Notes: generated by a model from the letters alone, not told the origin. Positions 57,756 through 64,000 are shown, counted from the first letter of the stretch. The stretch: 64,000 nt of DNA from Hyaloraphidium curvatum SAG 235-1 (GCA_025558095.1 JAIVFI010000016.1:677508-741507), one strand, 5' to 3'. Numbers and translations are program-made.

Positions 57756-59351
57756 TCAGTCATCGTCCGGATCCGAGGGAGGGTCGCTTCCGACGTCCAG
57801 GTCCGAATCCCCCTCGATCCCGCCCTCGGCCCCGCCGGTCCAGCCCACCTCGGCCTTCCACGCCCGCACGCTCGCCGTGTCCCAGTCCAGATCATCAGAG
57901 AGGCACTCCTCGTAATGATGGTGCGGATACGTGGCGAACCGAATGCCGGCGCGGCGGAGCCGCCTACGCGTCCGCGCCTCCCGGCGGACGAAGGCGCACC
58001 GGGCCTTGCGCAGGGTTTCGAGGGAAGGCATCCGGGAGGCCGCGAGCGCGAGCTGCGGGTGGCGGAGCGTGGAGGTGCTCACATCCAGATGCCGCAGGCG
58101 GCGGAGCGAGGATACGGCGGCGAGGCAGGCGGTGCCGATGTTCTCGTGTGCTATGGTCACGGATTCCAGCCCCGGGAGGCGGGCGAGGATCGCGCGGATG
58201 AACGCGGTGCCGCCGAAGACAGTGAGCACCAGTCGACGCACGGTCCGCGGAACCGAACGGGACAGCGCGTCGAGCGTGCCGTCGTCCGCGCTCAACTCGG
58301 CGAGGATCAGGGAGTCGAGCTCGGGAAGCTCCCGTACGGCATCGCCGAGCGCGCCGTCTGCGACGTCCCAATACGTTAGCTCCAGTTCGCGGAGACTGGT
58401 CCCCGACGAGATCATCGATGCCAGACGAGCGTCGAACTCCGCGGGCTCGCCGGACCTCCACGAACCCTTCACCGGGAGCCGCTCCAGGGACGGCACCAGC
58501 GGAGCCAGGAACGGGATGCATTCCGCGCCCTCGGCGAGATTATCGTCGAGGGCGATGTCCAACGATCGCAGCTTGTGCAAGCGCGAAATGGCGGCCAGCG
58601 CTTCCCTATCGACCCCGACCACCACCGCAAGGTCAAGGAGCTGTGCAGGAGCGGCGCGTAGTAGCGATGCAGAAGAGGATCCAAAACCTTCTGCCTGCCA
58701 CACCTCGGGTTCCATCAGGCAGAATTGCTCAAGGTGATCGAGGCCACGCATGGCCCGCTCGACGCCGTGCGTGGAAGTGCCCGCCCAGAAGGCGCCAAAG
58801 CGCAAGGCCAGTCGACGGACGGGCAGAGTTCGCGCTGCTTCCATGATGCGGATGCAAGTCGCGAACTCGTTCCCTTCCTCGAGGGGCAGAAGGAGCGTGT
58901 CCAGGCGCCCGAACCTGGGCACCACCGACGCGACGGCAGCACCCGTAGCTCGCGGGCTCGGTTCCTCCCTTAAGATATCCTTCAGGTCGAAGAGGACCAC
59001 ACACGTCACCATGCTGCAATACAGGTCCCCGTGCGGTGAGGCGAGAGAGGCAAACACGGCAGCGCAGCGCGCGCCGTCGTCAAGCTCGCGCGGTCCGAGA
59101 TGCCGGTAGACCCGCGACGCCGCGGCCGCCAGGAAATCCGAGCTGACACCGGCGAGAGGAGCCACCACTTTGCGAGTTTTGGCACATGAGCATTCGCGCC
59201 GGAGGGGCTCCAGACCGTATCCCTTGCCCGCGAAGAGGCACGGCGGGGCGACGAAATGCACGATGCGGTCGACGACTTCCGGGGGCAGCCTGCGCCGCTC
59301 GGCAATCTCGGAACGCGGAACAGCATTGTGCACCGGCTGAAGGTCGGCCAT
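57756..59351 (-). CDS. F-box-like / RNI-type LRR protein
   Basis: RLPPEVVDRIVHFV; repeated LxxLxL; acidic tail; intronless 531-aa ORF. Confidence 0.8.
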   Translation of the reverse strand: MADLQPVHNAVPRSEIAERRRLPPEVVDRIVHFVAPPCLFAGKGYGLEPLRRECSCAKTRKVVAPLAGVSSDFLAAAASRVYRHLGPRELDDGARCAAVFASLASPHGDLYCSMVTCVVLFDLKDILREEPSPRATGAAVASVVPRFGRLDTLLLPLEEGNEFATCIRIMEAARTLPVRRLALRFGAFWAGTSTHGVERAMRGLDHLEQFCLMEPEVWQAEGFGSSSASLLRAAPAQLLDLAVVVGVDREALAAISRLHKLRSLDIALDDNLAEGAECIPFLAPLVPSLERLPVKGSWRSGEPAEFDARLASMISSGTSLRELELTYWDVADGALGDAVRELPELDSLILAELSADDGTLDALSRSVPRTVRRLVLTVFGGTAFIRAILARLPGLESVTIAHENIGTACLAAVSSLRRLRHLDVSTSTLRHPQLALAASRMPSLETLRKARCAFVRREARTRRRLRRAGIRFATYPHHHYEECLSDDLDWDTASVRAWKAEVGWTGGAEGGIEGDSDLDVGSDPPSDPDDD

Positions 59352-59430
59352 GGCTCTGTCTCCGTGAACCGCGACTCGTCTCCTTCAATCGCGCGTCGCT
59401 TTGTTTACTCCGATCGCCGCGCGTTCCCCG

Positions 59431-60735
59431 ATGCCCGACACGTCGCATCCCGCGCCGCTGACGCGCCTCGCGTTCGGCTCGTGTTCCAACGCCCGCAAGG
59501 GGCGGCAGTCGGACGTGTGGGATGCCGTCGCCGCGCGGCAGCCCGAGCTGTGGGTGTGGACGGGCGACGCGGTCTACGCGAAGGGCGGCACGGGGAGCTC
59601 GGAGAAGGCCCTCGATCGCGTGAAGGATGCCTACGGACAGATGCTGGGCGCGACGCTGGGACGTTGGGCGGCCAACACCACGGGCGACTCGGCCTACGCG
59701 TCGTTCGCCCGCTCGCTGCCCCTTCCCGTCGTCGGCACGTGGGACGACCACGACCTCGGGAGGAACGACGGGGGCAGGCACGTCCCGCGTCTGCCCGAGC
59801 GGCAGGCCGCCTTCCTCGACTTTCTCGGCGTGCCCGCCGGATCGACCCTGCGCGCGCGCCACGGCGTGTTCGCGCACCACGTCTACGGCCCGCCTGACCG
59901 CCGCGTCAGCCTCATCCTGGTTGACACCCGCACCTCCCGCGACGACCACGTCGTCCCCTCGGTCGCCTGGTACATGGACACCACCCCGCTCTCGACCTTC
60001 TGGGCCCTGCTGGCCGCCTGCATCCGCTTCGCGTCGGCATACTCGGGTCTCACCGCCCTCGGCGACCGGCGCGGACGGCAGATGCTCGGGGAGGAGCAGT
60101 GGACCTGGCTCGCCCGCGCGCTCGCGGAGCCGGCCAACGCCACCCTCCTCGTCTCGTCGGTGCAGGTCGTCGCGACCACCCCAACCACCGAATCGTGGGG
60201 CCACTTCCCCCGCGAGCGCACGCGGCTCCTCCGCCTCCTCCGCGAGGCCGACCCCGCGGGACTGGTCATCGTCTCGGGGGACGTCCACGTCGCCGAGGTG
60301 CTCGGGCTGCCGGGTCTCCCGGACCTCGAGGTCACCTCCTCGGGGCTGACGCACAGCTGCGCCGACTCGCTCAAGGTGCAGGCGCTGTGCGACTTGGTGT
60401 GGTCGTTCGGGGGGGAGCACAGGCGGGGGGTGTTTGTGGGGAGGAACTGGGCCGACGTGTCGGTGGACTGGGAGGGGGAGAAGGTAACGGTGGAGGTGCG
60501 GTCGCTGGAGGAGGGGAGCAGGGGGGAGGTGGTGCTCAGCGTCGAGAGGGGAATGGGGGTGCGGGCGACGGAGCTGATCCCGGCGGATGTGGACGGGGTT
60601 CAGGGGGTGGTTCCGGGGCCGGCGTGGATCGCGGCGTTCTACCTCGCGGTGCTCGCGGTGCTGATTGCCCTCGTCGCGGTGACGCGGTGGCACTTCGGTT
60701 CGAGGCGGCGGTCCGCAAAGCGGAAGGCAGAATAG
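59431..60735 (+). CDS. phoD: PhoD-like alkaline phosphatase/phosphodiesterase with C-terminal TM anchor
   Basis: LAFGSC, WTGDAVY, WDDHD, DTR, MLGEEQW, ESW, SGDVH, TSSG; intronless. Confidence 0.92.
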   Translation: MPDTSHPAPLTRLAFGSCSNARKGRQSDVWDAVAARQPELWVWTGDAVYAKGGTGSSEKALDRVKDAYGQMLGATLGRWAANTTGDSAYASFARSLPLPVVGTWDDHDLGRNDGGRHVPRLPERQAAFLDFLGVPAGSTLRARHGVFAHHVYGPPDRRVSLILVDTRTSRDDHVVPSVAWYMDTTPLSTFWALLAACIRFASAYSGLTALGDRRGRQMLGEEQWTWLARALAEPANATLLVSSVQVVATTPTTESWGHFPRERTRLLRLLREADPAGLVIVSGDVHVAEVLGLPGLPDLEVTSSGLTHSCADSLKVQALCDLVWSFGGEHRRGVFVGRNWADVSVDWEGEKVTVEVRSLEEGSRGEVVLSVERGMGVRATELIPADVDGVQGVVPGPAWIAAFYLAVLAVLIALVAVTRWHFGSRRRSAKRKAE

Positions 60736-60854
60736 AGGATTCCCGCAGCAGGGCTGACAACGATCGATCGATGTGTCCGCCGGGAGGCGTGAGGAAGGGT
60801 CTTCCGCGTTCGACAGATTCCCGATTCTTGGCTGCCAAGCAAGGCCAAGGTATA

Positions 60855-60869
60855 CCTAACCTAACCTAA
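60855..60869 (-). repeat. Interstitial telomeric tract (CCTAA)3, inverted relative to the terminal telomere
   Basis: CCTAACCTAACCTAA read directly, 120 bp after the last gene. Confidence 0.8.
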
Positions 60870-61309
60870 GTGCGACATCTACCCCGCTTCAATAGAGTTA
60901 GGGCACTGTCTGCCGGGGTCCGCTGGGGCCGGGGTTTAAGCTCCGCCGGGGCCGAATAGTCAATGCACGGGCTCGCTGACTGGCCTACCGCTTTGGAGAG
61001 TCATTTCGGGCCCGGGCGGCGATATGATCGAACACGCAGGCGACCCGGATGGCTCGAGGGCGCCTTGCGTGACGAGACGCTCCGCCCACCCAAGCGCCGC
61101 ATCACCGCCCCAACTCCCTGCTGCCGCGCGAAATGAGCCACCCCGCCACATCCACCTTCGACTCCCAAGCCGCCCTTGCTGCCGCCGACCTTGCCGGCTC
61201 CGCGCTGCATCTGCCCGAGTCGTGTGATGGTGCGCCCGCGGCCGAGAATGGCCCGTTGCCGCGGGATTCGGCAACGTGTGCGGGGAGTTCGGACCGCCTC
61301 GTCGTGGAC

Positions 61310-63865
61310 CTAGTACCTTGTTGGGTGTAGAAACGGCGTTTCTACGTGTACCCACAAGTCGCCACACGGGTGGCGACTCCCAGGAACGGCGTTTCTTGGC
61401 GTCACCTCCGTCCCGCCCAACTCCGGAACGCAGCCTTGCACACAATTCCGCGTAGAAACGGAGCTGCCGGGAAATGACGACACCGCCAGCTCCAGCGCTA
61501 TCCACCAGTAGGCTGATAGCCCGGGAGGAGGTGTAGCGCGTGGACGCCGGCGAGGAAGGCGGCCGCGGCTCGGGTCCCAACTAGTAGAGGTCCGCCCCTT
61601 CCCCTCAGCGCGGTCCGCGGTCCCCACGGCGCCTTCCATACTATAGCGCGCTGCCGCTGCTGGCGCAACGAAGGCACCCGAGGTGTCTCCGGGTGTGGGG
61701 TGAGGTCGAGTTGCGCGGGGGGCGGACGGACGCGGGACGACCTTGCGGCGCCGTCGCCCACACCCCGAGTTCCACTCTGCCGGCTCCGCGGCCCCCATGG
61801 GCTCGACGCAGTGTGGTGCCCTACCGGCTGGCGGCGGCGCGGGGTCCGCGGACGGTTGGGGAACCGGCGCCGGCGCCGCGACCAAGTTGGACACGGACAC
61901 GGCTGCCACCCCCTTCCCCACCGGTGCCCCGCCCTGCGACGCGACCCGTTGCCTTGCGCGACCGAAGCGCGTGTCCTCTGCCGTTTGCCGGAACGGGGAC
62001 GCGGTTTTGCGCGCGGGCCAAGTCCGTGGACCCGGACCTTCGCCGCGTCCGCGCTCGGAGGGTACCGCTCTAGGGCTCCCGCGCACGTGCCTGTGCATTC
62101 GCCGGTATCATGCCTACACGCTCTGGCGATGGGGGACGCTGACTACGAGGTTGGTGTTGGGGGAGGGGCCCCCGCTGTGGTCGTCCTTGGCCTAGTACCC
62201 TGTTGGGCGCAGAATCGGCGATTCTGGCAGTCGCCACCAGTCACCAAACGGACGGTGACGGCCAGGATCGCCGATTCTGGGCGTCACCTCCGCCAAACCG
62301 AACTCCGGATCGCAGCCCTGCCCGCTATTCCCCTCGGATTCGCCAGCTCCGAGCACCGCTGACACCGCCTATACCCTGGACCGGGTTGCGAACGGCGTTC
62401 GGAAGCCTTGCCATCACTTGCCAAACGGAGGGCAAGTTTTCCGAACGCCGTTCGGAAGACTTGCGATCCCGGACCCGCCACTCCGGACGACCACTGTGCC
62501 CCCCCGGCGATTGCGGACGCCGGTTCCCGGGTACCATTGGCTTGAGCAGGTCCGGCGCCGTCTTCTGCCGGGTGGAGAGCCGGGAGGAAGGCGAAGAGCC
62601 CCGACGCCGGCGAGGAAGGCAGCAGGAGGAGGACGTCCAGTTGGCGGAGCTTCGTCGGTTCCCCCTCCGCCGGCCGCTCGATCCCAGGGTAGAATAGAGC
62701 CTATCCCGCCGTTTTGCATGCGGGGGAAGGACGCCTGACGAGGTCCTGGGGTGGGGTGAGCCGGCCTCGGGGGAACGGCGCCCTCGTCTTGGGACCCTCT
62801 CGTGGCGTCGCCGCCCCCTCCCCTCCCCGGCCTCTCCCCGCCTCGGCACCCCCACCAGCTCGCCGCAGTATGCCCTTCTCCAAACGTGCGGCGTCGCGCG
62901 GTCCCTCGGCCACCTGGGCACCGGTGCCGACCCCGATAAGCAAGCGGACACGGCCACGTCCGTGGCACCCTCCCTCGCCGTCCTGCCCCCTCCCGACGCG
63001 CCCCCCGCGCTTTTTCGATTATGGCGCATGGGTTCCGGCGTTGGCCCGCGCCCTGGCGGGGTTTTGCGCGTCGGAGTTCTCCTCGGGCCGGCACCTTCGT
63101 CGCCACGGGGCTCGGCCACTTATGTCCCCAGCCAAGCGGCTGGACTACCAACGGCTCTGTTGTACCTATGCAATCGAGCAATGGACGTGGGAGGAGCCCC
63201 GGCGGGGTTGGTGCATGACCGGCAGACTCGCTGCCCACCAGGTCGGGGGAAGACAACGTGTCGCCTGAACCTCGCCGGCCACCCGCAACCGCACGGCAGA
63301 TGATTGCAACAGATACGCAATGGTGATCGCGCTCGTTCCTGGGCAGTTTGACGCCGTCCAGGTTCACCAGGGTCCGCGCGCCCCCACGGCTTCCTTGGGC
63401 CAGTGACTGACGATGGGCCAAGATCGACAGGCCCGAGTCCCGCCCGCCGCAGCTCATTCGTTTGCCGTTGTTGATCAAGGAAAGGGCGATGTCCGGGAGC
63501 GTGGGGCCTGGAAGGTCCAACCACCTCGCGCTCCCCGGCCGGATGACCTCCCACGCCCAAGGCCGGCGCCGTCGTCCGAAGTTGACAGCGACGGATCCCA
63601 CCGCTCTTCCTTCATTCGATTGCCAATGTTCGTCCGGGATCCGGCCGAGCTTGGCCCATAGTCGGTCGCCGAGCTCCCTCTCGCCCCGCTTGCGCGGACG
63701 ATCGGCAAGCAAGGCGTGGGGAACCCGCGAAAGTCCTTCCTGTCCCGCCCCTCGAAGTCATGGGGTTGAAGAGGCACATGAGGCATCCCGGCCCGCGCGA
63801 TAGAACTCCCCCCCGCGACTCTGCGGGGCATCGGGCGCTAGGGCCCGCGTCCCGGGGATGGAACT
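61310..63865. repeat. Three diverged head-to-tail subtelomeric units (A 61310-62191, B 62192-62368, C 62369-63865)
   Basis: Shared start CTA(G)TACCYTG plus palindrome module; A and C are colinear at about 1056-1060 bp offset (identical 18-mer at 61543 and 62603; GTGGGGTGAG at 61695 and 62751). Confidence 0.8.
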
Positions 63866-64000
63866 TTAGGTTAGGTTAGGTTAGGTTAGGTTAGGTTAGG
63901 TTAGGTTAGGTTAGGTTAGGTTAGGTTAGGTTAGGTTAGGTTAGGTTAGGTTAGGTTAGTTAGGTTAGGTTAGTAGGTTAGGTAGGTTAGGTTAGGTTAG
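63866..64000 (+). repeat. Telomere (TTAGG)n
   Basis: About 27 tandem TTAGG, G-rich strand running 5'->3' toward the window end, a few variants distally. Confidence 0.97.

Follow-up and report, generated by a model that had tools for sequence, protein, structure and literature searches.

Hairpin modules at a chromosome end are best explained as fixed heads of a non-coding, telomere-directed repeat that is specific to its lineage

The window analyzed here is the last 64 kb of contig C16, one of 55 contigs in a eukaryotic assembly of 31.9 Mb with ~68% G+C, and the end of the window is the end of the contig. The plus strand terminates in a (TTAGG)n telomere (63866 to 64000), and three hairpin-forming modules are located 1.4-2.6 kb from it. 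No contig of the assembly starts with (CCTAA)n. An interstitial (CCTAA)3 tract, read on the plus strand and inverted relative to the telomere, lies at 60855 to 60869, 440 bp upstream of the first unit described below; these 440 bp are single-copy in the genome, and the tract is given as context, not as a demonstrated part of the element.

The modules (61310, 62192 and 62370), first noted in a preliminary description, each constitute the initial ~95 nt, or head, of a subtelomeric unit that is non-coding and at least 1.5 kb long. Unit A (61310 to 62191, plus strand) consists of an A-type head and a body that is cut at unit nt 882. Four other chromosome ends are homologous to it from 61307-61310 onward; the unit is 95% identical to C22:1932-1049, and its body goes on in C11 past the point at which the C16 copy ends. 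The A-type leader (61310 to 61327, plus strand) measures 18 nt from a fixed first base to the palindrome, and the identical first base stands beside unrelated flanks in C22, C3, C10 (twice), C36 and C8. The long A-type hairpin (61329 to 61396, plus strand; DNA fold -31.9 kcal/mol, z -4.1) is supported by the RNAalifold consensus and by pair counts given below, and the parts of this region are P1 (61328-61344), a small hairpin (61358-61377), P2 (61381-61398) and the sequence ACTCCGGA (61420-61427).

Unit B (62192 to 62369, plus strand) is a B-type head that is cut at unit nt 178. A search for public sequencing runs yielded two, kept as contigs and DNA-like, neither of them recorded as RNA. We used these independent runs for checks of junctions, and in one of them the B head was found with two further upstream flanks, both absent from the present assembly, that end exactly at 62191/62192. 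The B-type long hairpin (62211 to 62278, plus strand) is an inverted repeat with 29-nt arms that are 86% complementary (fold -36.9 kcal/mol, z -5.3); P1 is at 62210-62226, the small hairpin at 62240-62259 and P2 at 62263-62280. Unit C (62369 to 63865, plus strand) has a C-type head and the longest body seen, ~1.5 kb, and is capped by the telomere. The true start of the unit is one base before 62370 (CCTATACC). Copies 97-99% identical to unit C were found on C14, C11, C35, C12, C6 and C22. The C-type long hairpin (62386 to 62457, plus strand) is an inverted repeat with 30-nt arms that are 87% complementary (fold -36.3 kcal/mol, z -5.4), and includes P1 (62387-62403), a small hairpin (62417-62436) and a perfect 19-bp palindrome (62439-62457), which is part of an extended palindrome that runs to 62464. 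The leaders bear a resemblance to C-strand telomere repeats in degenerate form (CCTA...CCCT).

Homology among the A, B and C bodies extends over at least 1.5 kb, with conserved blocks, many indels and mosaic recombinants such as the copy on C11; no distal terminus common to these units was seen. An intact associated ORF, which the preliminary description had proposed as a check, was not found: mismatch phase in 11 unit pairs showed no 3-periodicity, eight open frames from both strands of the units gave no Pfam match at E up to 1, and none of the unit copies, the longest of which is 1.5 kb, contains a Gag or RT ORF. These coding tests likewise lend no support to a decayed DDE transposase at 63020-63712.

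All of the module sequences quoted in that description were found at the places given for them. The spacings of 13, 8 and 3 nt, which it had called identical, are truly invariant among the A, B and C types, because an alignment of nine such heads from five contigs is free of gaps over columns 10-97. The three head types are only ~60% identical to each other, and indels, which are absent from the head spacing, are frequent in the bodies. Each head opens with a leader of 18-19 nt, after which come P1, X, X, X', P2 and X, in which P is a self-complementary core of 15-19 bp and X is a 6-nt motif present in three direct copies and one inverted copy. Perfect 7-1-7 palindromes are ~17-fold over-represented in the region (3 observed vs 0.17 expected). 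A 17-bp palindrome had been described for every copy; P1 of the C type carries a G/G mismatch at its second position. The compensatory changes reported for the three local hairpins are clearly present, with 95.3% pairing, double changes in 12 of 19 pairs and no one-sided changes. These values were reached by none of 500 shuffles, and in a control in which the partner was slid by 1-3 columns pairing fell to 25-50%.

The three local palindromes can pair as had been suggested, but the minimum-energy structure and that predicted by RNAalifold are one long hairpin, in which columns 20-44 pair with 63-87, extended by 15-19 with 90-94. For the 20-44/63-87 helix we observed 88.4% pairing and double changes in 15 of 25 pairs, and RNAalifold, which predicted the same long helix, counted 15 pairs that were preserved by changes on both sides. 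When each copy was folded as a single strand, whichever strand was taken, the result was one long hairpin of ~70-80 nt located 18-19 nt from the unit start, with z scores of -4.1 to -6.5 for the plus strand and -2.5 to -5.5 for the minus strand. Judged by these folding predictions, one long hairpin is the best reading of the three small palindromes, whose local pairings are alternatives open to the same repeated motifs. The local hairpins, the long hairpin and a 33-bp palindrome around P2 are all possible, and each of these pairings co-varies, since within one head the copies of P and X all change in concert. The direct copies of X co-vary with the inverted copy. With regard to the structured RNA or ssDNA switch that the preliminary description offered as an alternative, the mismatches point to no transcribed strand: those of the G.T type and the A.C type are about equally frequent, and for this reason neither strand stands out as a folded RNA.

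The pair counts (95.3% for the local hairpins, 88.4% for the long hairpin) agree with the earlier claim that symmetry is retained across diverged members of the family. Template switching at quasi-palindromes can yield multi-base, compensatory-looking changes in DNA hairpins without selection, and in the present data selection for symmetry cannot be separated from homogenization by such switching (PMC8794818).

A strong conserved hairpin might also be expected of a host cis-element or structured ncRNA gene (a subtelomeric promoter, terminator, boundary or hairpin RNA precursor) that is not a mobile terminus, and the weak likenesses we detected were to microRNA-precursor models only. We regard this explanation as very improbable. 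A search of positions 58000-64000 on both strands (E up to 1) found no Rfam family at its gathering threshold, and the best matches, to mir-718 (28.7 bits, threshold 55) and mir-4776 (23.3 bits, threshold 97), scored far below it. Such a function also leaves unexplained the fixed junction with unrelated DNA and the stacking of units that are described below, and many copies are cut through the hairpin. Moreover, heads of any type are absent from the inspected telomeric ends C1, C2, C4 and C5, and C43 and C28 carry only heads of a fourth type, D.

Genome-wide searches for heads, by BLAST and with a covariance model built from the head alignment, showed that the three copies noted originally are real but belong to a total of 18 A/B/C heads, which represent ~5-6 independent sequence lineages. 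These are distributed over 12 contig ends (C16, C22, C3, C10, C36, C8, C14, C11, C35, C12, C6 and C33), at distances of 57 nt to ~2.6 kb from the telomere, and all run from head to telomere. The covariance-model scan that had been recommended thus recovered further copies, with every A/B/C copy at a chromosome end, and this distribution sustains the original proposal that the module is the end of an uncharacterized, telomere-associated repeated element. Neither method detected a convincing internal A/B/C head in the whole assembly; the only other sub-threshold match of note was a 48-nt fragment on C30, and matches of the model on the reverse strand were to the palindromes themselves only. A second pair of matches on C10, which sits in a fold-back palindrome centered on the telomere, is probably an assembly artifact.

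Six D-type heads were found on C8, C10, C11, C43 and C28, in addition to one copy that lies 115 kb inside C26. All 6 begin at one nucleotide beside unrelated flanks and have a leader of 19 nt, the length seen in type C, followed by an A+T-rich, 16-bp palindrome that is unrelated in sequence to those of types A, B and C; the D bodies are homologous to the A and C bodies. Therefore, the conserved feature of the superfamily is a palindrome located 18-19 nt from a fixed start, and not a given sequence. All 24 heads (18 A/B/C and 6 D) have one orientation (P ~6e-5 for 15 ends). Capture of inverted ends by breakage-fusion-bridge cycles was rejected, as it predicts both orientations and a single one was observed. 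On C8, and in no other case, a D head comes after a (CCTAA)3 tract, in phase with it. We also rejected the idea that this (CCTAA)3 is the tail of a LINE, for other copies of the LINE in question run past the point at which the C8 fragment stops.

These results bear directly on the suggestion that the modules are the terminus of a cut-and-paste DNA transposon, of the CMC/EnSpm or hAT kind, in which the palindromes and X motifs would be arrayed half-sites for a transposase. The half-sites and X motifs do co-vary within a copy, in direct and inverted orientation, as subterminal transposase sites do, and AAACGG-like motifs recur. However, a second, inverted end is absent, with 24 of 24 heads in one orientation; there are no dispersed copies; and no transposase was found by the coding tests or in Pfam. 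The recognition sequences, furthermore, differ wholly among A, B, C, a variant on C33 and D, which is better accommodated by recognition of structure. The more specific comparison with CMC/EnSpm-like termini, made in the preliminary description, fails in addition for want of a CACTA-type terminus, and we consider a cut-and-paste origin highly unlikely.

The proximal ends of the units are exact. Of the 18 A/B/C heads, 15 begin at unit nt 1 and the others at nt 3, 24 and 52, and the DNA upstream of the homology start is unrelated in every case. We observed no poly(A) or oligo(A) at the proximal junctions, where the flanks directly abut the heads. TTAGG repeats precede none of the 24 heads and were never seen between stacked units at the stacked junctions inspected. 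Read-through by telomerase of its own RNA was set aside, as TTAGG never stands ahead of a head. The continuation of the recipient is known for four junctions (A882|B; B178|C; a first, cut C head joined to a second C head on C11; and the C11 body joined to a D head), and in all four there is microhomology of 1-3 nt. Contigs of the independent runs read across A|B, across the chimera that joins a C head to an A body and across the junction on C12, and the arrangement is therefore not an artifact of the way in which this genome was assembled.

An exact end with a subterminal hairpin and a short CTAG tail is also what the minus strand of a Helitron-like (HUH, ssDNA, rolling-circle) 3' terminus would present, and by this account the fixed orientation would come from targeting of the lagging-strand template of the terminal replicon. 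Indeed, the A and B heads end in CTAG on the minus strand, with the palindrome 17-18 nt upstream, and the genome has three Helitron_like_N loci. Against this, C and D heads end in ATAGG and not in CTRR; a T comes after the terminus in no more than 1 of 8 A/B copies, which breaks the A|T target rule; the head model found no match near the Rep loci or at internal positions; and such an origin does not account for confinement to the last ~3 kb. We consider a Helitron-like origin unlikely.

The distal ends, in contrast to the fixed starts, fall at 17 different unit positions. They are followed by telomere repeats (the first of which are TTAGGG or TTTAGGG variants), by the first base of the next head, or by other captured DNA. 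The hairpin is a hot spot of breakage: 5 of 17 independent distal ends are inside the 18-nt hairpin apex (P ~1e-6 if breaks are uniform), and 7 of 17 are inside the 68-nt hairpin as a whole. The loop at 62423-62430 corresponds to the break site of the copies on C22, C6, C33, C11 and C12. What comes after an apex break differs from end to end. On C36, telomerase healed the break directly; on C22, the next sequence is a 5'-truncated reverse-transcriptase fragment; on C33, it is a retrotransposon-related repeat; and on C6, it is an 810-bp copy from the other arm of the same contig, the right end having been patched from its own left arm in the telomere-relative orientation. The copy on C12 starts at the apex and retains only the half of the head distal to it. 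B heads are repeatedly cut at nt 76-78, and the complementary piece, B 78-125, immediately follows a LINE 3' end on C30. The reverse-transcriptase fragment that follows the C head on C22 is known as three fragments only and points to the telomere; we found no link between it and the unit.

Breakage of this kind is at the center of an explanation that involves DNA only. According to it, the fragile quasi-palindrome breaks and is repaired by break-induced or microhomology-mediated replication and end joining, with other chromosome ends as donors; the choice of donor keeps the telomere-relative orientation, the fixed start reflects a nick, or the end of a nascent strand, at the hairpin's foot on the donor, and symmetry is held by template switching between the arms and not by selection. 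The clustering of distal ends and the C12 copy that begins at the apex are what one would predict, as are the self-patch on C6, the A|B junction block that is common to C16 and C22, the C11 chimera of a C head and an A body, and a head-to-head telomere relic on C2, which is a relic of fusion. The lack of strand bias among wobble-type mismatches, and the ability of template switching to mimic compensatory changes (PMC8794818), are likewise in its favor. Yet such patching should give scattered starts, whereas a single starting nucleotide, beside unrelated flanks, is common to 15 of 18 A/B/C heads and, among D heads, to 6 of 6, and it does not predict a head spacing without indels across types that are ~60% identical. 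We know of no enzyme or process that fixes the donor end in DNA-only patching. We consider this account, the main rival of the one that we favor, possible but doubtful.

In the aggregate, the modules are best explained as fixed heads of a non-coding repeat that is specific to its lineage and directed to the telomere, and the outward stacking of this repeat on at least 12 ends looks like an undescribed way to patch broken chromosome ends. The single orientation, the exact proximal end, the unrelated flanks, the distal truncation and the stacking are the signature left when an exposed 3' end of a chromosome is extended along a template whose own 3' end is fixed. That the sequence of the head is replaceable while its shape and distance from the start are not argues for recognition of a structure in single-stranded nucleic acid, and against a sequence-specific protein that binds the duplex. 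LINE families of this genome show the same copying signature: their 3' ends are sharp and lack poly(A), they are truncated at the 5' end, and a hairpin lies 8-21 nt ahead of the 3' end. In LINE family 1, a 17-nt tail follows the palindrome, which is also the case on the minus strand of the A head. From the junction signature, the likeness to LINEs and the structural type of recognition we therefore favor a retro-like terminal addition. Our working proposal, held tentatively and at somewhat less than an even chance, is that broken ends grow by the copying of a template whose 3' end is fixed, probably RNA and by a logic like that of HeT-A or LINEs, with the hairpin as the recognition structure.

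In this proposal, each unit would be a patch on a chromosome end from which the telomere and some sequence had gone. The broken chromosome's exposed 3' end would pair over 1-3 nt with a single-stranded template, at the 3' terminus of the latter, and would be extended on it, the final bases of the template being the complement of the first bases of the head. The polymerase would recognize the long hairpin 17-19 nt from the 3' terminus of the template, and because of such recognition the shape and spacing of the hairpin would be kept while its sequence is free to change. We infer a single-stranded template, its RNA nature and the enzyme; the template is probably a minus-strand RNA of another unit, which a reverse transcriptase would copy in trans. 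The patch would start at a constant nucleotide, grow toward the new end and later be eroded or broken; the eroded patch would then be capped again by telomerase or by a further patch. In duplex or replicating DNA the hairpin would be fragile and would generate new broken ends.

Several observations weigh against an RNA template. A search of the genome found no autonomous partner and no LINE with the same head or body. The G.T and A.C mismatches are equal in frequency, and the co-variation of direct X copies goes beyond the conservation of a simple stem. Transfer at the level of DNA is certain in the case of the A|B block of C16 and C22 and the 810-bp patch on C6, and breaks at the apex point to a DNA hairpin and not to an RNA hairpin. 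With more reserve still, we suggest a class of hairpin-guided, non-coding terminal elements in which a transcript or single strand, whose fixed 3' end lies 17-19 nt beyond a long hairpin, is copied directly onto broken ends that lack telomeres. Such a class could constitute a second end-healing system beside telomerase, one that makes its own substrate by fragility; we think this conceivable but doubtful.

Judged from sequence comparisons, the family looks like an undescribed telomere-associated terminal repeat, with no relative in Rfam or, by exact leader patterns, among metagenome and viral contigs. The exact A/B leader pattern occurred at 11 loci in metagenome contigs, none of which has the module (the best model score was 18 bits, for the leader alone), and three exact leader/palindrome patterns matched nothing in viral contigs; both scans used exact patterns only, which diverged relatives could escape. 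Telomere-directed elements are known mainly from organisms without telomerase, such as Drosophila, and those of telomerase-positive organisms are, to our knowledge, protein-coding and pair with telomere repeats. Here, a genome with TTAGG telomerase repeats also appears to heal its ends by means of a non-coding unit that has an exact start, a hairpin kept in structure and free in sequence, and junctions without telomere repeats. A mechanism templated by RNA or ssDNA, if true, would represent a new route for rebuilding chromosome ends and a natural system in which to study the fragility of hairpins and the de novo addition of telomeres at defined sites, and would add a case to the debate on the relationship between telomerase and terminal retroelements. 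Should the mechanism involve DNA only, the family would still be a clean natural example of quasi-palindrome maintenance and of breakage centered on a hairpin.

Among known systems, quasi-palindrome template switching (PMC8794818) fits the compensatory-looking changes but not the fixed start, the 18-19-nt leader across types or the terminal stacking. The Athena and Coprina elements, which are endonuclease-deficient and Penelope-like, occupy chromosome termini of a telomerase-positive organism, encode RT and join G-overhangs by reverse-complement telomeric repeats beside a hammerhead ribozyme, and a structured RNA motif near their 3' end has been proposed to ready priming (PMC8557442). An element of this kind was rejected for the present family, since TTAGG is ahead of 0 of 24 heads, no hammerhead was found (Rfam, E up to 1) and there is no RT (PMC8557442). 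The present family does share with Athena and Coprina the restriction to termini beside telomerase.

The 3' terminus of Helitrons and the ends of IS200/IS605 elements have a subterminal hairpin at a fixed short distance from a defined end. Our units are similar in having a hairpin near an exact end, with structure kept and sequence free, and in the CTAG of the A and B heads, but they have neither an A|T target nor a Rep-bearing partner, their C and D heads lack CTRR, and they are strictly terminal. The Y' and X elements of yeast and the Sultan elements of Chlamydomonas are subtelomeric repeats that spread via homology or interstitial telomere tracts. These resemble our units as mostly non-coding repeats on many ends, with fixed orientation and mosaic recombinants; the proximal junctions of our units differ in being with unrelated DNA at an exact nucleotide. 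Finally, the HeT-A, TART and TAHRE elements of Drosophila form telomeric retrotransposon arrays, and LINE-1 can insert independently of its endonuclease at uncapped ends. The present family differs from the Drosophila elements in that its units have no Gag/RT ORF or poly(A), the ends continue to be capped by telomerase repeats, the RNA intermediate of the units is a putative one, and the long head hairpin has no described counterpart there. Yet, as in HeT-A, TART and TAHRE, the units occur only at chromosome ends, in one orientation and in head-to-tail stacks, with an intact centromere-proximal end, variable distal truncation and no target-site features.

The sequence (TTAGG)6 matches the Hyaloraphidium curvatum assembly (G000) 703 times, each time on the forward strand and never on the reverse, and a contig start made of (CCTAA)n was found on no contig of the assembly. 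Contigs C22 and C9 begin in subtelomeric repeats. The forward-only distribution may reflect a bias of assembly, base-calling or orientation, and half of the chromosome ends may therefore be missing. At the new telomeres on contigs C14, C12, C35, C8 and C36, TTAGGG, TTTAGG or TTTAGGG variants come first, followed by TTAGG.

Contig C10 carries a fold-back palindrome centred on a telomere (G000:C10:807544-814653; excerpts L010 and L012), in which the subtelomere is followed by TTAGG repeats, then by degenerate CCTAA repeats, and finally by the reverse complement of the C10 subtelomere; this arrangement is either a chimeric-read artefact or the product of a sister fusion. On contig C2, ~2.2 kb from the telomere, 2 mini telomere tracts meet head to head, TTAGGTTAG and then TTAACCTAA (L033:3821-3847), with unrelated coding-like sequences on both sides, and this junction looks like a relic of the fusion of two critically short telomeres. 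In the window, a gene for a PhoD-like phosphatase (59401-60735) is followed, 120 nt past its stop, by (CCTAA)3 in inverted orientation (60855-60869); the next 440 bp are single-copy in the genome.

LINE families 1 and 2 of this genome (excerpts L047-L052) lack poly(A), and their copies are 5'-truncated and ~99% identical; family 1 terminates 17-21 nt beyond a 13-bp palindrome, and family 2 terminates 8-10 nt beyond a 10-bp stem with a ~48-nt loop. On contig C30, at ~36.1 kb (L028:1020-1150), the 48 nt after the 3' terminus of a family 2 LINE match nt 78-125 of the hairpin-bearing B head (window 62269-62316) at every position, and unrelated DNA comes next. The B-head piece reflects either a template jump or 3' transduction by a LINE whose insertion site was B nt 78. 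At the start of contig C22, a non-LTR reverse transcriptase-like open frame of 303 codons (L008:1-911, minus strand) is joined to the apex, or 18-nt top, of the long C-head hairpin. A Pfam search of this frame at E 0.001 gave no match, and its family comprises only 2 other fragments (C7:745420 and C12:195284). Helitron_like_N was detected above the Pfam cut-off at 3 internal loci (G000:C2:541600, C35:92638 and C8:491059).

The right end of contig C6 carries an 810-bp duplicate (L019:4346-5155), 98% identical to sequence 10-11 kb inside the left end of the same contig (G000:C6:10361-11170) and in the same telomere-relative orientation, with its junction at a C-type hairpin apex. The final 83 nt before the window's telomere (63783-63865) have an inverted match of 99% identity 11 kb inside contig C11 (G000:C11:805177-805259). 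Finally, a ~1-kb unit with the fourth, D-type head lies on the minus strand of contig C26 (L029; G000:C26:114500-117000), 115 kb from the contig end, and is followed by another repeat that is common to C5, C3, C33 and C2. This unit may be a onetime chromosome end that was later extended.
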